From the sequence record OU343168.1: 64,000 nt of DNA; one strand, given 5' to 3'. The number at the start of each line of letters is the position of its first letter. Within the stretch, counting starts at the first letter, position 1. Shown one piece after another: positions 7,238 to 52,886 of this stretch. Position numbers and translations under genes: made by a program. Below the pieces are notes generated by a model, which had not been told where the DNA came from, did no database searches, and saw nothing but the letters and a program-made list of their open reading frames with translations.

Positions 7238-7295
7238 ACACCGTACTAGGAGTAGCCCATAAGGGCTACTCCTAGGGGTGTATTTTATTTTTGTT
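7238..7295. terminator. Terminator between convergent genes
   Basis: 13-bp stem CTAGGAGTAGCCC/GGGCTACTCCTAG plus TATTTTATTTTT. Confidence 0.85.
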
Positions 7296-34642: not shown

Positions 34643-34695
34643 GGAGTAGGTGCGCTAGCGCACCTACTCCCCTTCCCCTTTATTCTTTATTTTTT
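34643..34695 (+). terminator. Intrinsic terminator
   Basis: 28-nt palindrome GGAGTAGGTGCGCTAGCGCACCTACTCC plus TTTATTCTTTATTTTT. Confidence 0.8.
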
Positions 34696-44200: not shown

Positions 44201-45846
44201 TTAAAGGTATCCGCTACCTTTTGGTTATGGCTGACCAACTTACCCCGTACGTAGTCATAACTCGACGCTTTAAGGGTATCATCCCCCGTACGGATCTTTT
44301 CAATCGACAAGTGAATGTGGCTGAGCAGTTCGGGGATCACTTCATTCAGGGTACGGGAGGACTGTTTGTTCCAGATCTCCGGTTCGTGGGCATCCATTAA
44401 CCCGCGACGTTTCAGGCTGTAACGACTCCCGGTGGGTTGGTACAACTCATCCAACAACCCCGCCATGCCTTTATTCGCCCCTTTCTTCAGGGTATTAATA
44501 ACCGTCCATTCCACTTTACCCAAGGGCTTTTGACCTGAACGGAGCGTACTGAGGTATTGTTCGTAGTCCCCGTCCTCGTCAAACGAGGATCCCCAGTTGT
44601 GGTATTCCGAAAGGGTATTGACCATTCCTTCCGCATTACTGAGGTTATACGACGCTATGTTACCCAAATCCGTGAGTTGCGCGTACGCGTTATCCGCCCA
44701 TTTCCCCAGTTCCGGGAATTGTTTCTTGAACTTAGCAACGTATTCCTTTCCCTTACGGGAATTGATCATCCGGGGGAGGTTGCTAATGAACATTTGGGCC
44801 GCAACGTTACCCACCATGGTCCCTACGTTGAGCGGCATGCCTTCCGACATCTCCGCCGCCATGCGCATGGCGCCAATCAGGTCACCTGCACCTCGGATTC
44901 CGTCCCCTCGCGCATCCTTACCGAACCGCTCGTTAATAAACTCACGTATTCCTCCAAAGGAGCCTTTAACCGTATTGAAGACCGATTCCCGAATGCTATT
45001 ACGCATCGCTTGACTGTGGGTGGTCTTTTCGTAATCACTCTTAGCGGAGTTCAGGGCAATGGTCTTCAGTTCAGCAATCATCCGGTGATTACTGGCTTCC
45101 ATGAACTTGTAGAACTTCGCGCTGGTCAAATAGGAACGGGCCAACAGGTTCACCTTGAGGGTATCATTCCTCAATTGAACTTTACGTTGGTAATTCACCA
45201 TTTGTTCCAGCAGTTGGTTACTCCGCCCAATACTCAGGTTCAGGGTATTCAACCCCCCAATGGTGCGGCCACCTACTTCGGTCATCATGGCGGTAATACT
45301 TTCACCCACCCCAATGACCGTTTCCCGCTCTAACAGGGAGTTAGCATCTTCACTCCCCAGTAGGTCTTTCACATCATTTTCGCCCACATTTTCCATGGAC
45401 GGGGTGTCACTCGCCGACGACGTATATGGCTTCCAACTGCTGAAGTCATTTTGACTGAACCGAGTCAGCCCACTGGCTACACCCCCGGTGATCTTATTAG
45501 GAGCTATTTTACCTAACTTATCACCACCCCGTTTAGCCAAGTATTGGAGGTCCACGACTGCGTCGTAGCTTTCACGTTTAAGTTCGTCTACGATCTCCCT
45601 CCGACGACGGTTAATGTCCGACGCCGTAGTAAAGGCAGTCCCCCAGGTCTTAGGGAGGACCATCTTCAGGGTGTTCAACCGAGCATCGGTGTCCCCTACT
45701 GTCTGATTCACTACACCTGACAAAAACCCGGTTGCTACCGAACGAATGAACCCCGGTTTCTTCCCATCGAAATCGGTATCGAAATCAATATCCCCGGTAA
45801 AGGGATCCTCTCCCCAATCGAAATCATCGAATGTATTATCCGCCAT
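38215..45846 (-). CDS. Giant tail-associated lytic (tape-measure/tail-tip) protein, phiKZ gp181/EL183-like, with GH19 and M15-like domains
   Basis: 2543 aa; TM-like Gly-rich segments; GH19 motifs NYESSG..TTE and DGYRYRGRGFIQLTGRANY; M15-like SKGAHPKGLALDF...GHIH. Confidence 0.88.
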   Translation of the reverse strand: MADNTFDDFDWGEDPFTGDIDFDTDFDGKKPGFIRSVATGFLSGVVNQTVGDTDARLNTLKMVLPKTWGTAFTTASDINRRRREIVDELKRESYDAVVDLQYLAKRGGDKLGKIAPNKITGGVASGLTRFSQNDFSSWKPYTSSASDTPSMENVGENDVKDLLGSEDANSLLERETVIGVGESITAMMTEVGGRTIGGLNTLNLSIGRSNQLLEQMVNYQRKVQLRNDTLKVNLLARSYLTSAKFYKFMEASNHRMIAELKTIALNSAKSDYEKTTHSQAMRNSIRESVFNTVKGSFGGIREFINERFGKDARGDGIRGAGDLIGAMRMAAEMSEGMPLNVGTMVGNVAAQMFISNLPRMINSRKGKEYVAKFKKQFPELGKWADNAYAQLTDLGNIASYNLSNAEGMVNTLSEYHNWGSSFDEDGDYEQYLSTLRSGQKPLGKVEWTVINTLKKGANKGMAGLLDELYQPTGSRYSLKRRGLMDAHEPEIWNKQSSRTLNEVIPELLSHIHLSIEKIRTGDDTLKASSYDYVRGKLVSHNQKVADTFNRVMDKDQFKSQADTSLRLVDSIDPNKELSNEARRVLAMQLVQNADKRKGFSPYLYMNLETKGVNRQVADEIRELFQRNFDITPEAFTAFKEGSTLDRASAIARLPTEQARERAAKLTEQSNLLGRFMPDIAERVDMLRSSGYYNVMKEAGIIKSENGHDEVNMDTFRNVLQSFIDNPDRAMVYDNPLEEAVRKTRSFGRRGRGRRDAGGVIAAENAQLNETLQGVRETLDKLGAHIEQGGVSRSGLTDPSSMFTTLNDQVTQGNSLLGKLVELGGNRNDILTKILERQPYEKTTPEAEEVIQQQKRSILERIKSTSFGDLFNKGIDKLLDNQPLVLGGLLGGLAGMAIYNPKGAALVGGGLALGMAYNKLRARAAARRAENTEDLYEEGSDTPILESFKLFKGEYLDMLTGKIIQGWDQITGSIKDLANGAVIGASRLAGKLFTEDNKEVFLKGLNKVRDLFMKAFNWLDPVNRIKGFWDKARTRLYRMDIYIEGEDEPVLLGSRFGKGQYFKRSGDGFVELQGWDEIDGPVYDKEGNTLITAEEYDRGLKTSMGTSINKLGAGLKQAGQFGLDLFGKLKDRAGGYAKGMGGRVKNPFSTDHSPVVNSVDRIYYLLLKHWGYNSPDGSPNPFTPPAPGSQDGPEGPPGSLGDRNDLTLTEALMEKNPALKDALESFRAAKGKAGEGDNTDRFRRSASSNDATRANSLADRAQKLQEEKDNTVKNAIISIAENFGFGMKDEKELGKKKKFGIFGLLSSLVGGVKKGFEWLTSFLGSEVLWSGFSALFKFGRMGLKLLTIIAKGVAGGLGGLLNGLGGLGHLGKLGAGRAGLIGAGALSAYEMYQVATDEETKKLGTTDQILKVGKAGNSLYQQVGATAGLLGGQTIAKWILEKVKGKSPTTDALGSSMYSPFGVMLGTSKWGWDSLFGSGKGKQIELRMVQYGLSDPHGPLAAKILNVENLLKDHVVIGNGRASLSKQAPIEEVLRLFVGNPQDRNEIGEVFTWFNGRFKPVYLTYLACLDAVKLRSLKDYDDSSDLIVYKVAKQAHSALSGLVPSPYQIVAKIDKETPLLDQQMTIIRVGNLLDALKKYVGAKDPSIDPFAVSTVKGQSLESLQKERVQLERKLEDRSTQWKDFGEKMEATDRLKEVKGEIDRLGKAYTANAVVGQIYIQDLMPDGKALDMLTAIRVATYGNDKDVPWRVEAVLKLERHCESLFMAKGDDMVFKGNIGELFARFKDAFRVDDRYVDAWCKWFRDRFLPVLTNYMTLMRKYRRGLPGVVWRTLSATARYEIAKELTQTQVNGVFGFTISVWNVRAAPFAWETSPGRSDKVDRMLNLLGEASVEAKLKDPELEAGKTNAQTWAEKISPHRVGGGFTDQQANVSTPEQFRSRRDSALGGMYGTFGGDAGNTYSSDGRFRTPENAFGFTPITGDSDTSHLDMTGVRTNQGTDRGVSVPKPLAEQLIIREMLKQGFTDPREIAEMLALTNYESSGYSRTTENMKYSSPERLVQLFREVKSMEQARALVQAGEVAIANTVYGGGKGASLGNREAGDGYRYRGRGFIQLTGRANYRRVGQELGIDLENRPELASNDPNVMAAIAVNFFRNSKLLRSISQTGDFGRAATGLNGGNPLPEMPQRYALYLNYLKKLQSGELTTADKTAGSGLGSQTGSDLYGQEAPSEPQRPQVSRPAPGVVGGSLPSLNGTMGGGGGQYGSGDNGGMIVNTNTPGSSGLRLKSPEAIAGGEHHPAVEELGKIIQQTVPGFRYFSALNDAYHVNKGSKGAHPKGLALDFTLVNGAQGSDQAVAIVTDILRRAGLSPQEFQVINEYRSRTALGTGGHIHAAFKSPEAANKFLNAVRGGQSANGQDTTGLGGGVVGPMQRNVPPTPTPTFGNPATDVPISTPRSNEGSPPPSAPQPVPSAPFEPVPQSPRGTEALTTARSDDSALVAELKASLGKLGDNSSDTNSILAEIYKVLGRMAEMQDKQVNQGTDKTVRLN

Positions 45847-45876
45847 TGTTAATGCACTCCCGCATAAGGAAACCGT

Positions 45877-47319
45877 ATGAAACCGACTAACATTACCCTC
45901 TTAGACCCCCGGACGATTGTTCCGGGTGTCTTTAAACCTATTACGTCCACGGACTCGTTTGAAGGGATGACTCAGAACCTCAATGATGATGGTCTCTTCT
46001 CCCTTGACATCTTCGGTAAACTGGGTAGTAAACAACGTGATAACACGGAAGCGTATATCGACGTTAAACTTCCCATCTTCAATCCCACTTACCTAAAAGC
46101 CCTTATACAGATCAAAAGTCTGTATCATTCAATTTTGAAAGGATCGGAATACGCGGTATGGGATCCCGAACTGAAGGATTTCATAAAATCGAACATCCTG
46201 GAAGGGGAAAAGGGTTTCGCCTTCTTCCTGAAACATTTTGATGAAACCGTCTTCTCCCTGACCCCCTCTCATAAACGCAAACAACGGGTGGAACTGGCGA
46301 ACCAATTCCGTAACACGGCGTTAACGGATAAGGTCCTGGTCATCCCCGCGGGTCTCAGGGATATCCAATTCAATCCAGATGGTTCCCACACCGAACCTGA
46401 AATCACTGAATTCTACCGCGCCTTAATGTTCCGGGTGAGGGTGATCCTCGGGAATAAGGAAGATGCCCTGAACCCCCTTTACGATACCGTTAGGTGGGGG
46501 GTACAGAATGCTTTCTTGGAATTGGATAATTACCTCTTTGGTTTACTCCAAGGGAAAGGGGGTGTTCTCCAGCGCCGTATGTCCACCCGGGGGGTTCACA
46601 ACAGCACCCGGAACGTCATTACCGCCCGTAAAGTCTCCAGGACACGTTTAGACTTCGACGACGGTGTAGGTCCTAACTCTGCGGACATGGGACTCTACCA
46701 AGCCCTACTGAACTTCCCTTATGTCTGCATCAATGCGTTAACCAACGGCTACCTTTCCAACATCTTCACCCCCAGCTCTCAAACCGCTAAGCTGGTGAAT
46801 ACCAAGACCCTGGAATACGAATACGCTGAAGTCTCCCCTGAGGTGGTAGAGAAATGGACCACCGCCACCGGGTTAATGAAACTCTTCAACGGGTTTGCCG
46901 ATCCCTCCTTACGGAGTAAACCCATTGTCATTGAGTGGAAATACTTAGCCCTCATTTATGATGATGGGACTGATGTGTGTGTTCTCCATGACATCAACGA
47001 TCTCCCTCAAGGGAAAGACCGTAAATGGGTGAAACCTATCACCTACATGGAACTCTTCTACTTGAGTTGCCACAGTGTCATCGAAGAACAGATTACGGGA
47101 CAAACCCGGTATCCCATTACGGGGATTGGCTCTATCTTCCCGGCTAAGGTGAACCTACGTACCACCACCAATGCGAGTCAGAGGGTGATCCGTAATCCGA
47201 TTGATTGGAGTGTACGGGAAACCTGTAAACGGTTCCCTAAACGCGAAGCGCATCCCGATTACTTCGATGCCATGTCCGTAGACCCCTCTAGAGAAGCTTT
47301 GCTCGACAGTGACCATGAT
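45877..47319 (+). CDS. rpoC: Virion RNA polymerase beta' subunit fragment (phiKZ gp180-like), exon 1
   Basis: DGLFSLDIFG, VLVIPAGLRD, LQGKGG..R...RGV motifs; ends ...LLDSDHD at the 5' splice site. Confidence 0.9.
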
Positions 47320-49091
47320 TAGATAGTGATGCATGATATAAACTCACTATACAACTCCTATTGTATGCGGAAGTGTTCGCATTCGACCATAAGGAGTTGT
47401 AAAGATGCTAACGTGTTTTGGAAAGAAATACGTGTTGTCTACAACCAACACGGTTTACAATGTCACCGATAAGACAGATGTTCCAGTCCATCGGATGACA
47501 GACGGGAATACGTTCTTCATCGCACGGGGCGATGAAAACGAACTGGTTAAGATCAAACTGGGGTTAATGATCCTCCATGGAGAAGGAAAGTTCCATCTTC
47601 CTCTCTCTGAATGGGAACAGGTGAAAGTAGGTTTTCTGGATGACGATACAGGAAACTTTGCAGCGGATAACCTTTACTTGGTCTATCCTGAAGAGGGCAT
47701 CCCTTACCCTGAACTCTCTGGGTACTACTACATCCCTGGGTTTGAACTCAACGCAATCAACCGAGACGGTGTGGTATACCGAACAGTTAGAAAGAATCTT
47801 TACCCACCGTATCTGGGTGGTAACACCGTTCCTAACAGTTTCTACCCCTTTGTTCGACTGGATGTGGTCAGTGGGGATGAACGCAAGTATGTCCACCGGC
47901 TACTGGCGGAGACCTTCGGTAAGCCGCCTAAGGGCTACCCCAAGCTACTGGTCGACCATAATGACGGTAACAAGATGAACTTCAAGCTCTTTAACTTGAT
48001 TTGGGTTACCGCTAAGGACAACTCCTTCAAAGCGTACAACAATCAAGAAGCGAGAGCGGACAATAATCCCCTGGAGGTTTTTGACAGGGAATTAGGTCAA
48101 GTCTTTAAGTACGTCAGTCAAAATGAGTTTGCTAGAACCATGGAGGTGGATTCTTGGTGCATTGGTCTGGTGCTCAAACGTCCTCGCTCGGTGTACAAGA
48201 ACAGGTACGTTCTTCGTCGGAAGGGAGATACACGTGACTTCCAAGAGATCTGGGACTATAAGCCCCCTGTGGGTAAGAAGATCCTTGCCCGGAATGTCTT
48301 CACCGGTGAAATCACGGTGTATAATTCATTGGCGGAGGCCTCTAGAGCAACACAGGTAGGGACAACAGGCATCCTGACGTCCCTGAGTAACACCAACCCG
48401 AGATCCGCCTTTAAAGACCTTCAATTCAAGCGGGAGTCTGACGAGACCCCTTGGCCCGATTTGAATGAATACGAACTGGAATGCATCCGGCGCAAGATGC
48501 ACCCTGCTACAGCTGTGTATGAAATGTTTGATTCGGTAACCCAGGAGACGTCGATTGTGTATGGCGTTGATGCAGTTACCCGAATCACCGGAGCCAATCC
48601 CCGTACCGTTATCGTTTGCGCACGAGAAGGTAAGTTGCTCCATTCCCGTTATCGTTTCAAGAAACTTACACGTTAACGAGTTTATATCCATCACTTAGTC
48701 CGGCTAGGCACGAAAGTCCTAGACCGTATTCCTCTGAATTGCTGGGAGTTCACAAAAGTCTGTTGGCTACAACGTAACTGGAAACAGTAAGCGTGAATGC
48801 GACCGAAAGGTAGAAAGAACAACAGACCTGACCTACGCTAACCAATAACGCTAAGGGTCGTAAACAAGGGACAATCAGCCGCTAAGACGCTACCGGGTAT
48901 TAGACCCTATGCGTAAAGTTCAACGACTAAGGGAGTTATGACCCTGTACACCTACCAAGGAAGGGGGTGGAAGTGGAGGAGACCTAAGGGGGAATAGACC
49001 TATTCCCTACGGTCAAGATATAGTCTGGCCCTGTTTAATAAACAGGCAGGCACCTGAGTGTGCCGGGTCCTAGTACGGACTGACCACCGCG
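47320..49091 (+). mobile_element. Group I intron (1772 nt) with HNH gene in the P1 loop
   Basis: P GAATTGCTGGGA 48736, Q ACAATCAGCC 48871, R GTTCAACGACTA 48918, S AAGATATAGTCT 49015 (P7 GACUA/UAGUC); P1 GAU|UA pairs with UAGUC 48696-48700 giving a U.G pair; ends in G. Confidence 0.93.
47405..48676 (+). CDS. Intron-encoded NUMOD4/HNH homing endonuclease
   Basis: YVHRLLAETF...VDHNDGNKMN....NLIWVTAKDN; repeated C-terminal NUMOD1-like DNA-binding modules. Confidence 0.92.
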   Translation: MLTCFGKKYVLSTTNTVYNVTDKTDVPVHRMTDGNTFFIARGDENELVKIKLGLMILHGEGKFHLPLSEWEQVKVGFLDDDTGNFAADNLYLVYPEEGIPYPELSGYYYIPGFELNAINRDGVVYRTVRKNLYPPYLGGNTVPNSFYPFVRLDVVSGDERKYVHRLLAETFGKPPKGYPKLLVDHNDGNKMNFKLFNLIWVTAKDNSFKAYNNQEARADNNPLEVFDRELGQVFKYVSQNEFARTMEVDSWCIGLVLKRPRSVYKNRYVLRRKGDTRDFQEIWDYKPPVGKKILARNVFTGEITVYNSLAEASRATQVGTTGILTSLSNTNPRSAFKDLQFKRESDETPWPDLNEYELECIRRKMHPATAVYEMFDSVTQETSIVYGVDAVTRITGANPRTVIVCAREGKLLHSRYRFKKLTR

Positions 49092-49274
49092 GGCGATCAA
49101 TTGTCGAGCCATTCTGTTGTAGCGGAAGACAGCAAACAACAGGCCTACGAACTCTTTGGGAAACGGGAGTATTACATCAGTGGTACAGGTCGGTTTTTGT
49201 ATGATCCGATCAATGAACCGATTCTCTTTATGTTTAAAGCAGCGACGAGCGGCTTAGAGGATATTGAGGTATGA
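49092..49274 (+). CDS. rpoC: RNAP beta' fragment exon 2 (60 aa; not in the ORF track)
   Basis: GGC GAT CAA... (GDQLSSHSVV...EDIEV*) completes DHD|GD; its stop overlaps the next ATG (ATGA); spliced product 541 aa. Confidence 0.9.
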   Translation, partial: GDQLSSHSVVAEDSKQQAYELFGKREYYISGTGRFLYDPINEPILFMFKAATSGLEDIEV

Positions 49275-52200
49275 GCAATCCAATTACGTATTCCGAGTTC
49301 TTTAAGCACTTTGTGCTGCGTAAGAAACAAGACGTTGTAAACCCTAAAGTCCTGGGTATTGGTGAAGTGATCCTTCCTAAGGGGAGTTTGCTGCACTTCG
49401 TACCGAAGACGGTTAATGAAAAGGGACCGGGTAGTAGTGAAGCGTTTATCAGTAACTTCCCTAAAGAGGTCTTTATTGAGTTTGTAAGGGACGGGTATAA
49501 GCCGGTGATGGGGCATGGGCGGGTAGTCGCCTATGACTACCCTAAGGCGGTTAAGGCGTACCGGGCGAGTCACTACATGTACAGCTGGGTGCGTGAGATC
49601 AGCACGGTGTACAACAAAGAGAACGTGCTAGTCGTTAAGAACTACGGGATGATTCCTCAGGGGTTCGTTTACCGTCCGAGTATTTTCGTGAATTATGAAA
49701 AATACTACAACATGATGCACCTGCTCATTGAGAACATCAATGCGGAAGCCGAGAAAGGGGTGCGTCGGCAGTATATGCGGATTGACCTGCCGTTGAACCT
49801 ACCGTCCCTGGTTGAGCTTGAGAAAGACTACGGACGGTTTATTGATGGGTTTAAGGACGGGCATCCTGTCCTGATGCGCAACATGCTGGAGAGTACGAAG
49901 GCTGAGAACTGCTATTGGCTGTTGGACCTACTGGGGTTCCTGTTTGGCCAGTATTCGTTCAGTTTGTTCGGTAAACTCACCGACCAGGCGTATAAGGATT
50001 TGCATATCCTCTTTACGTCACAAAGTAAAGTCATTGTGGTACAACTGGGGCTGTTGAAGGGTTGGTTAGATGAGACAAATCCTAAAGACGAGAAAACCTA
50101 CCCCTCTGCTCGGAAAGAGTTTGAAAGTCTGAAGACATTGACCCGCCATAATGCGGTTAAACGTTTCTATTTGGCTTTGATGAATCTTTCTCGTGGAGGC
50201 GTTCCTGAGAATGTACTCATTAAAGAGGAAACGAAAAATGTCATCCCAATTGCCGGAGAGAAAGGTACCGTTGACCAAGTGGCTGCGGGAACGTCACGAG
50301 AAGAAGAAGAAGAAACATCCAATCTTCCAGAAACCCGAGACCATACTGGCTCGGGCACGGTTCCCCGTGCTGATCGTCCTGCTGGTTCTATCCTTGATGT
50401 TTTCAGCCGAAGTGAAGGACCTGGCGAGGCACATGACGAAGAGCAAGACACAGCGGGAGAACGAGGTGCTGATTCAAATCTTGAAGAGTGGACATCGCCG
50501 GTAGATGATAAACTGCTGGAGGTGGAGAAAGTCCAAACCGAGATCAATACCAACAAGAATGTGTTTAAGACGCCTGAGAGTGGTGTAAAGCGGGCGTTGG
50601 AGGAGCGGGCTAAGGAAGGTACGCTGACGGTGGCTGAACATGATTTCTTCATGCGTAAAGCGACCCGTTATCAGCACATTGAAATGGAGAACGGTCAAAC
50701 GTTCGAAGAGTTCATTCAGATCAAACCCGAAGAGGTTAAAGACCTGGGTGGAGAGATTGAAGGTGAGTTTCTCCCCGTACTGGATGAGAGCATGTTGCGG
50801 AGTCGTGCTAAATCCCTCAAGATCGAGTATCCTCAGAAGTTTTTACACCGGGATATTGGTCGAATGGTGTTGGGTCTTCAGAACGCTGGCTTTGCGATGA
50901 ACGACTACCGGCGTGAGAAGGTCGTCAGCGTAGAAGGCAGTTACGAGGTCCACAGCATTCAGTTGCACGAAGTCAATGGTGATCAGGTCACTGTACATAC
51001 TCGGTTGCCCACGGTGCTGAAAGACGGTACGTACGTCATTGATGGTGTTAAGCAACACATGCAACTGCAACGTCGGGAGAAACCCTTCCGGAAGATCAGT
51101 CCTCGGGAAGTGGTACTGTCGAGCTACTACGACCGTAAGCTCATGGTGAGTCGTAGTCCGAAGATGGTGGATAACCTCTCTACGTTCATGGTGAAGCAAA
51201 TCTCCCTCCAGAGTAAGCGGAAAGGCTATACGGTCACTAAAGGCAGTACCTGGGATCGTTCCCTTAAAGCCCCCCGGATTTACAGCATTCTGGCTCGTCA
51301 GTACAAGTACATTACTGTCGACGGGTTGGTATTGGACTTCCGGTTGAAGGATCTCCTGGAACTCCACCCTGAGTTCAAAGCCTATACCCGCCCTGATCGG
51401 TTCTTGATTGGGGTAAAAGACGGATTACCTTTGATCATTGATGATTACGGTAACCTGTACAAAGGGGAAGAGGAGCTCGGTACCGTTGAAGACTTGCTCG
51501 GTATTGATGTTCGTAAAGCGCCTTTGGAACACGTGGTGATTAACATCAGCGGGTATTCGTTTCCGTTGGGAGTGGTCCTGTGCTTCTACTTCGGTATTGA
51601 TGAACTGTTGCGGGTGATTAAAGCCACGACACGTTCGGTACCCGTAGGGACTCGCCCTAAATTGACGGAGGATGAATACGCGATTCAGTTCAATGACGAA
51701 TACCTGATCTTTAACCGTCGGGAGAAGCTCACCACGTTGATCTTCGGTGGAATGCCGAAGTTGAACAACATCAGTAACTTCAGTCGGAGTGATTTGAATA
51801 ATAACAGTATCTGGAGTGCATTGATGGGAGACCCGCGGGTTCGTCCATCTCAGTTCCAGGAAATGAAGAACCTCTTCGATCTCTTTATCGATCCCATTAC
51901 GAAAGACCTCTTGAAAGAGATGAAGCTGTCTGAAGACTTCCATTACTTGCTGATTGATGCGGCTAAGGCATTGGAAACGGATTACAGTCGACACGAGGTG
52001 GAGATTGAAGAGCAACGCATTGTAGGGTATGAACGCTTCGCGGGTCATCTCTACACGGAATTTGTAAAGTCCATTCGTCAATACCGGAATAAAGGGAAAG
52101 GACGTAAACACAAACTGGACTTTAATCCGGATGCGGTTATTATTGCCATTGGTACTGACCGGTCTACGAACTTGGTGGAAGAAGTGAATCCGGTTCACCA

Positions 52201-52471: not shown

Positions 52472-52886
52472 TGAGCTGTTGTGAAAACAATAGATCACTC
52501 AGTCCAACCAGGGAGTAATCCCTTGTTGCCATTACCTTTAATTGCGGGAACCTACTGAGAGCCTTATCTACCAAACCCGAGCAGGAAACCAACGGGTGGC
52601 CAACCATAACGGGTTGGGGACGGTAATAACGATAAGGATTGGGGAACCCTACGCAGCGAAGCACCTACGTATTGTCGAGAGGACAAGATAGGGTGAACGT
52701 TCAACGACTACGGATGAAATTTCCGGTAGAGGTGTCAGGATGATACTTCCAAAAGTAAGGTTGCCCTGTATGCTTGAGGTGTGAATAACACTGAGTACAG
52801 GGATGAAATATAGTCTCGTCATCTAAGGGAAAACCTTAGAGCGTGGTGCTACGCGCACCGGCGGATAGGATATCCGTGAAGAAACG
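52472..52886 (+). ncRNA. ORF-less group I intron (415 nt)
   Basis: P AATTGCGGGAA 52540, Q ACGCAGCGAAG about 52651, R GTTCAACGACTA 52699, S GAAATATAGTCT 52805; P1 GAU|UGAG pairs with CUCAGUC; ends ...AAACG. Confidence 0.93.

Follow-up and report, generated by a model that had tools for sequence, protein, structure and literature searches.

A hairpin over the ribosome-binding site of an intron-encoded HNH endonuclease gene in an EL-type jumbo phage, probably a translational repressor

The DNA analyzed here, referred to as the window, comprises 64,000 nucleotides (nt) of sequence record OU343168.1. Over 45800-49400 it shares 100% identity with Pseudomonas phage vB_PaeM_phiRU and 99% with phage EL, and by its sequence the window is an EL-type jumbo phage genome of Pseudomonas. 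The subject of this report is a hairpin that encloses the ribosome-binding site of an HNH homing endonuclease gene and probably acts as a translational repressor of that gene. The endonuclease gene lies in a group I intron which, judged by comparison with intronless relatives, interrupts the gene for the virion RNA polymerase beta' amid the codons for its catalytic aspartates (Table 1).

The intron, its exons and its endonuclease gene

The EL annotation lists three genes here, namely gp184 ('RNA polymerase beta subunit'), gp185 ('HNH endonuclease') and gp186 ('RNA polymerase beta subunit'). The tblastn matches of exon 1 to intronless phages stop exactly at 47319, where the exon ends as ...L-L-D-S-D-H-D, within the catalytic Asp motif; the next three bases, which are the first of the intron, form an in-frame TAG stop. 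Colinearity with intronless homologs was established exon by exon, with the last 200 codons before 47319 as the exon 1 query and the small frame 49074-49271 as the exon 2 query, exon 2 itself beginning at residue 7 of that frame, i.e., at 49092. The two exons matched adjacent positions in Joad (215285/215286), Aphrodite1 (15514/15515) and phiKT1019 (145151/145152), and they also covered adjacent positions (486/487) of the phrog_2986 profile; the intron was therefore taken to be 47320-49091, with the 5' splice site after U47319 and the 3' splice site after the terminal G49091. The junction reads L-L-D-S-D-H-D / G-D-Q-L, the equivalent of the magnesium-binding motif NADFDGD of beta'. Joined together, gp184 and 49092-49274 would make up a single beta' fragment of 541 amino acids that contains all three catalytic aspartates and is split by the intron, and the stop codon of exon 2 shares the sequence ATGA with the start codon of the polymerase gene that follows. 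Public annotations of EL-type phages stop gp184 at the intron TAG and have missed the split; in these, exon 2 is unannotated, or small hypothetical genes are called in the intron core.

Table 1. Features of the intron locus, in window coordinates
Feature	Position	Strand	Basis or remark
Exon 1, virion RNA polymerase beta' N-terminal subunit gene (EL gp184)	45877-47319	+	phrog_2986 profile positions 5-486
Group I intron, 1772 nt	47320-49091	+	RF00028 core; exon halves contiguous in intronless phages
P1 (predicted)	47317-47321 with 48696-48700, including U47319.G48698 wobble	+	Cofold
P1 and extension, 5' strand (GAU/UA)	47317-47345	+	Duplex energy, cofold pair list
P1 extension (predicted)	47325-47331 with 48689-48695; 47335-47345 with 48678-48688	+	Cofold
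Local alternative hairpin AUAGUGA/UCACUAU	47323-47350	+	Minimum free energy fold of isolated leader
Hairpin over the ribosome-binding site	47350-47401	+	Arms 47350-47359/47392-47401; inner hairpin 47365-47382; -20.3 kcal/mol
TATG, candidate phiKZ-type late start (G47367)	47364-47367	+	Motif match, between the arms
Shine-Dalgarno AGGAG of the HNH gene	47392-47396	+	In 3' arm, 8 nt before ATG 47405
HNH homing endonuclease gene, intron-encoded (EL gp185, 423 aa)	47405-48676	+	PF13392, phrog_59
Ribozyme core (P2-P9)	48673-49045	+	RF00028, 50.6 bits, E 4.8e-11, full model 1-253
P1 extension 3' strand and internal guide sequence	48678-48700	+	G48698 pairs with U47319
P2 (predicted)	48701-48726	+	Cofold
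Exon 2 (G-D-Q-L..., 60 codons and stop)	49092-49274	+	phrog_2986 positions 487-538

Like other group I introns of RF00028, that of EL matches the model over its full length, has a U.G pair at the 5' splice site and ends in a G, although the score of the core is barely over the gathering score of 50 because of the large insertions. The AAGAUAUAGUC J8/7-P7 element, typical of phage introns, is present in the core, and the ribozyme cores of phages VP4B, PDCC-1, FishSpeaker and 2 TSL-2019 are 67-69% identical to the EL core. Inspection of the intron by eye revealed no convincing P10. In EL-type records, the core query also matches 52472-52886. The endonuclease itself matches PF13392 (HNH_3) at 4.7e-11 (42.6 bits) and phrog_59 over residues 2-422 at 3.7e-49 (169 bits), and shows a weak match to I-HmuI (1U3E; E 0.0012); its homologs occupy the same intron position in four other phages.

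When the intron's 5' end was cofolded with the segment following the open reading frame (ORF), a long-range P1 duplex of 23 pairs was obtained, with an energy of -24.2 kcal/mol compared to -10.6 ± 2.7 in shuffled sequences, none of 300 of which reached it. From this pairing, the 59-nt leader and the HNH ORF (47346-48677, ~1.33 kb) are, in the predicted fold, an insertion in loop L1. The change 48694 C>T, a strain variant, retains its P1-extension pair as G.U. Moreover, the ORF-less intron of Klebsiella phage phiKp_32, located at the same site, has the same P1 layout as assessed by eye (three exon pairs, two pairs, a bulge and seven pairs); its sequence is fully different and yet complementary, and in place of the ~1.33 kb of EL there is a loop of 3 nt. 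Similar searches for a long-range P1 duplex in PDCC-1, 2 TSL-2019, FishSpeaker and phiKZ gave nothing above shuffles. A single nucleotide separates the HNH stop codon (48674-48676) from the P1 extension's 3' strand (48678). In the isolated leader, the local hairpin 47323-47350 draws on bases that also pair in the long-range P1 extension; the two are mutually exclusive. This local hairpin would form first in the course of transcription and be displaced once 48678-48695 has been made, ~1.3 kb later; it may serve as a placeholder or as a kinetic control of splicing.

The hairpin over the HNH ribosome-binding site

The sequence-only reading from which this analysis started had described a hairpin with 9-nt arms, ACAACTCCT at 47351-47359 and AGGAGTTGT at 47392-47400, with the HNH Shine-Dalgarno sequence in the 3' arm and a TATG between the arms. 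The complementarity proved exact and the positions of both motifs correct (Table 1), and the stem is in fact one pair longer, as T47350 and A47401 extend it outward. Thus, TACAACTCCT (47350-47359) pairs perfectly with AGGAGTTGTA (47392-47401) to form 10 pairs that close a 32-nt loop, which itself contains an inner hairpin of 7 bp (47365-47371/47376-47382). It sits at the base of the long-range P1 helix, starting 4 nt past the extension (47345 to 47350). The AGGAG that it encloses would form a duplex of -8.8 kcal/mol with the 3' end of 16S RNA.

The occlusion of this ribosome-binding site, also claimed in that reading, is indeed non-random by several measures. Folding of the region 47320-47440 has a z-score of -3.46 against dinucleotide shuffles. 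Perfect hairpins of at least 10 bp with a loop of at most 45 nt number 28 in the window, compared to 2.05 ± 1.4 in shuffles; it is therefore very unlikely that such a hairpin would fall on a given ribosome-binding site by chance (estimated at ~3e-4). Another measure was the energy needed to open positions -15 to +5 of the HNH start, for which 200 shuffles of the upstream 55 nt served as control: the native leader requires 15.3 kcal/mol, against shuffle means of 7.1-7.3 (standard deviation 2.2-2.5), and only one shuffle reached the native value.

Many of the 28 perfect hairpins are intergenic (2664-2696, 7246-7275, 34643-34670, and others). They have stem words such as AGGAGTAG/CTACTCCT and GGTAGGGG in common, and T-rich words, for example TTTATTTTT, are found in intergenic DNA only; these intergenic hairpins are probably a family of related terminators, and most of the 28 apart from that of the HNH leader have the appearance of terminators. 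As a separate observation, the leader contains further copies of GACCAT (47385-47390) and CATGAT (47332-47337), both from the last bases of exon 1. These repeats of exon sequence are 6-mers only, at roughly the chance level, and one copy lies just before the ribosome-binding site; in T4, the operator through which I-TevI is autorepressed is similar to its homing site.

Related introns and the case for translational repression

Homologous HNH genes and intron cores in the same polymerase gene were retrieved by tblastn and blastn. Those with an HNH gene were found in Raoultella phage VB_ZK_P1, Photobacterium phage PDCC-1, Vibrio phage 2 TSL-2019 and Shewanella phage FishSpeaker, and the ORF-less relatives were VP4B and phiKp_32. 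To these were added the leaders of phiKZ gp179, Goslar, Totoro, pir03, the HPP-Temi DNA polymerase intron, and phiKZ gp56 and gp72. A hairpin with its 3' arm on the ribosome-binding site was found in 10 of 11 intron HNH leaders, eight of which score over nearly all of their shuffles (Table 2), such that the design seen in EL is a recurrent one. In phiKZ gp179, a perfect 10-bp stem, GUUAUCCUAU/AUAGGAUAAC, covers the AGGA.

Table 2. Opening energies of intron HNH leaders
Leader	Opening energy (kcal/mol)	Shuffle mean	Shuffles reaching it (of 200)
EL	15.3	7.1-7.3	1
VB_ZK_P1	18.9	8.9	0
PDCC-1	14.4	7.1	1-2
FishSpeaker	10.6	5.0	3-4
Goslar	11.6	6.1	2
Totoro	12.1	6.2	6
HPP-Temi	10.4	5.0	8
pir03	7.7	4.0	7
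phiKZ gp179	7.5	4.8	13
phiKZ gp72	9.3	9.3	73
phiKZ gp56	1.1	3.7	191

The stems of these leaders have no common sequence and lie at variable distances from the splice site, and their 3' arm is always on the ribosome-binding site. Unrelated stems that always settle on this site are what would be expected of selection on occlusion rather than on ribozyme architecture. This bears on the possibility that the main role of the hairpin is in the architecture or folding of the ribozyme, as a peripheral stem at the base of the L1 insertion that aids the meeting of the two distant P1 strands or protects the RNA, its overlap with the ribosome-binding site being incidental. Helices usually close the large insertions of group I introns, and a hairpin lying 4 nt past the P1 extension could stack on it. 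On the other hand, the hairpin is local, and the P1 strands are joined by the P1 extension and not by the hairpin; among the relatives, the spacing between splice site and hairpin varies and the placement of the 3' arm is constant; and no such hairpin was found in the ORF-less phiKp_32 and VP4B. Considering its local nature and its absence from these ORF-less relatives, an architectural role is unlikely.

We therefore favor, at a probability of roughly 0.7, the view that the hairpin is a translational repressor of the intron HNH gene, one that would keep ribosomes off P1 and limit the nuclease. In the precursor RNA as well as in the excised intron, the 5' arm UACAACUCCU would pair with AGGAGUUGUA, so that 30S subunits could not bind the Shine-Dalgarno sequence. 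A ribosome that finished the ORF would lie over the P1 helix, by which the 5' splice site is defined, and unwind it; with the end of the ORF only 1 nt from the 3' strand of P1, translation would thus block splicing of the mRNA of the polymerase, an essential virion enzyme. Repression would also hold the dose of the nuclease low. We infer the formation of the hairpin in vivo, the lowered translation, and the protection of splicing as the selective reason, the last by analogy with T4 I-TevI. The nuclease could still be made from an internal start site, by leakage through the hairpin, or upon RNA processing, all of which are possibilities.

Several observations weigh against translational repression or fail to strengthen it. 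When 59 crude gene calls of the window are ranked by opening energy (median 9.7 kcal/mol), the HNH start is 5th, i.e., four other starts need equal or greater energy. The leader (47300-47420) is nearly invariant in seven EL-type isolates, and the only variants within the hairpin, at 47373 (isolates) and 47386 (DNA contigs), are both in unpaired positions; 47408, in codon 2, varies too. Such invariance carries little weight at 1-2% divergence, and since the isolates are 98-100% identical, there is no covariation within the hairpin. The four sequencing runs at the locus consist of DNA-like contigs with flat depth and Nextera adaptor ends, and contain no joints. Among the related leaders, the opening score of phiKZ gp179 is modest (13 of 200 shuffles reach it), phiKZ gp72 has a stem of only 6 bp, and no such hairpin was found in the phiKZ gp56 leader. 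It is to be noted that the gp72 stem lies mostly inside the segment held fixed, and hence the shuffle control is not apt for this leader. Lastly, members of Chimalliviridae, in which EL is classed by the taxonomy line of its record, keep translation apart from transcription, which takes place in the phage nucleus (PMC11620839, PMC12908238). The T4 rationale, namely interference by co-transcriptional ribosomes, may thus be inapplicable as such in EL, and the benefit of repression may concern exported unspliced RNA or excised RNA rather than co-transcriptional folding.

The related introns also offer some observations on their insertion sites. They interrupt the polymerase gene at three points, 6 nt apart, in the codons of one Asp motif: after the first Asp in PDCC-1, 2 TSL-2019 and phiKZ, after the second in EL and phiKp_32, and after the third in VB_ZK_P1, FishSpeaker and VP4B. 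The motif looks like a hot spot of independent or sliding intron insertions. The introns of PDCC-1 and 2 TSL-2019 have identical 5' leaders and different 3' ends, that of PDCC-1 being like VP4B. Splicing of PDCC-1 at that 3' end would lose four residues of the motif (YDGD), and its intron may be recombinant or defective.

A candidate internal start and comparison with known systems

The sequence-only reading had gone further, in proposing that a late transcript initiates inside the hairpin, as in T4. According to this proposal, the hairpin silences the long transcripts, and a late start at G47367 of the TATG yields a short RNA that lacks the 5' arm and can be translated. It extends the repression model and does not exclude it. 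The TATG lies 5-8 nt after the 5' arm, and the RNA predicted from G47367 has a 5'-terminal stem-loop (GCGGA/UUCGC) that leaves AGGAG free. TATG with its G as +1 is indeed an element of phiKZ late promoters (PMC4666361, PMC12809450), and the virion polymerase genes of phiKZ are middle genes, such that a later internal start would be sensible (PMC4666361). A TATG between the 5' arm and the ribosome-binding site was found in 5 of the 11 leaders, against 2.06 expected (P = 0.039, the lineages not being independent); its G lies 1-8 nt past the 5' arm in EL, VB_ZK_P1, Goslar and Totoro, and a longer string, YCTATTR(A)TATG, is common to EL, VB_ZK_P1 and Goslar.

Other results did not bear this proposal out. 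In EL alone, the chance of a TATG in the zone is ~0.15. The P value above is optimistic, because the five positive lineages are partly homologous, and YCTATTR(A)TATG is itself homologous in the three leaders that share it, which are hence not independent. In genome-scale motif tests, for which the 64-kb window and the EL record were used, TATG was not enriched before the genes of the window (22 in 8.1 kb upstream, or 2.7 per kb, compared to 2.08 per kb per strand overall). The extended form TATTN(1-2)TATG, which by eye is also seen in phiKZ P119L, was rejected as a candidate promoter, since it is not enriched in EL (five occurrences in the genome versus three of a control). Another candidate, the 6-mer ATTGTA upstream of genes (5 versus 0.67 expected), was rejected because its 17 sites share no context. 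The intergenic k-mers of EL comprised only terminator stems and T-rich tails, and a scan for sigma-70 promoters found nothing in the leader.

The role of TATG at late starts, which the sequence-only reading had drawn from phiKZ, is established only there, where the motif is necessary and not sufficient, and frequent in the genome (PMC4666361); moreover, the gp179 leader of phiKZ, the sole phage with proven TATG promoters, has no TATG. In phiKZ, TATG is read by a pocket of GP123 (PMC12809450). The EL homolog of GP123 is gp80, a beta-lobe subunit of the non-virion polymerase that is ~16-21% identical to its phiKZ counterpart. In an alignment at 16% identity, and therefore uncertain, it keeps only two of the seven TATG-contacting residues (S334 and Q466), whereas S144P, N186S, S330E, N398L and S402N are changed (residues from PMC12809450). 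With the pocket mostly changed, the late promoters of the EL clade may differ from TATG. Overall, the assignment of the TATG at 47364-47367 as a late start is unsupported, and an internal start at G47367 must be regarded as a tentative addition to the repression model, with the balance of the evidence against it. More doubtful still is its generalization, by which the intron HNH genes of nucleus-forming jumbo phages would share a conserved module of an anti-Shine-Dalgarno arm and a TATG start that acts as a T4-like timing switch, remade for multisubunit polymerases encoded by the phage. If this were true, the hairpin would silence the exported precursor and the excised intron RNA, with no part in co-transcriptional folding, and a dedicated late transcript, its timing suited to competition with co-infecting relatives, would be the sole source of the nuclease.

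The same motif, as UAUG in the RNA, raises the possibility that its AUG starts a short upstream frame, the translation of which would melt the hairpin and couple to the HNH start; what is conserved would then be a start codon and no promoter element. Such frames can be drawn in two relatives: in VB_ZK_P1, an 8-codon frame (AUG UGG AUU UAU AAU AGG GGG UUU UGA) ends in UGAUG on the HNH start, and in Goslar, an 8-codon frame from the loop UAUG stops 1 nt before the HNH AUG. In EL, however, the frame from the AUG at 47365 passes the HNH start and runs to 47472, while in Totoro and pir03 the frame stops after three codons. No Shine-Dalgarno sequence precedes any of these upstream AUGs, and a transcription start at the G of TATG would remove the AU. 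Coupling through an upstream frame is, on these grounds, highly improbable.

To return to translational repression, its closest precedent is in phage T4, where the sequence-only reading had also sought it. In T4 (I-TevI in td, I-TevII in nrdD, and I-TevIII in nrdB) as in EL, the endonuclease ORF lies in the group I intron of an essential gene, and a consensus Shine-Dalgarno sequence ~8 nt upstream of the AUG is enclosed by a very stable hairpin. As far as the hairpin is concerned, the parallel is closer than had been claimed, because the EL HNH gene is itself intron-encoded. As for the internal promoter, one has been mapped in T4, whereas in EL the candidate is only a 4-nt match. The ORFs of T4 introns are in P6 or P9 loops, unlike that of EL, which is in loop L1. 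Late promoters of T4 are sigma-dependent (TATAAATA), while the EL phage has multisubunit polymerases of its own and not sigma-dependent late promoters. In both phages, the ORF's 3' terminus abuts structured intron RNA, so that ribosomes would disturb splicing (PMC2988022). For I-TevI, I-TevII, I-TevIII and segB of T4 and for mobE of Aeh1, a Shine-Dalgarno sequence ~8 nt before the AUG in a stable hairpin of the long transcripts has been described, and deletion of the I-TevI hairpin reduces td splicing (PMC2988022).

Two jumbo phages offer further comparison. The gp180-gp179-gp178 region of phiKZ resembles the EL locus in that the same catalytic motif of the virion polymerase beta' N-terminal gene is targeted, the endonucleases are homologous (26% identity), a group I core (92 bits) follows gp179, and a perfect 10-bp hairpin covers the ribosome-binding site; it differs in that the insertion is 6 nt upstream, after the first Asp codon, and in that the hairpin loop has 9 nt and no TATG. 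The phiKZ exon ends would join as GAD/FDGD, and a long-read transcriptome of phiKZ saw no splicing under its conditions (10.1101/2023.10.13.562163). PhiPA3 gp210, like the EL nuclease, is an HNH homing endonuclease of a group I intron that interrupts a virion polymerase gene of a jumbo phage at conserved aspartates (PMC11620839), although its intron is in the beta subunit gene. It has a role in fitness, as a weapon between co-infecting jumbo phages, and a search of that paper by terms found no mention of a promoter or a hairpin (PMC11620839). Likewise, a term search of the literature on jumbo-phage introns found no description of hairpin control for intron nucleases.

This kind of control is known from T4, and our results support the EL hairpin as a further instance of it, in a jumbo phage. 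If translational repression is correct, the T4 rule that an intron nuclease is left untranslated on the RNA of its host gene, so that the intron can splice, would extend to giant phages with a phage nucleus and polymerases of their own. The element is also compact and testable, consisting of 52 nt, one stem and one candidate start site.

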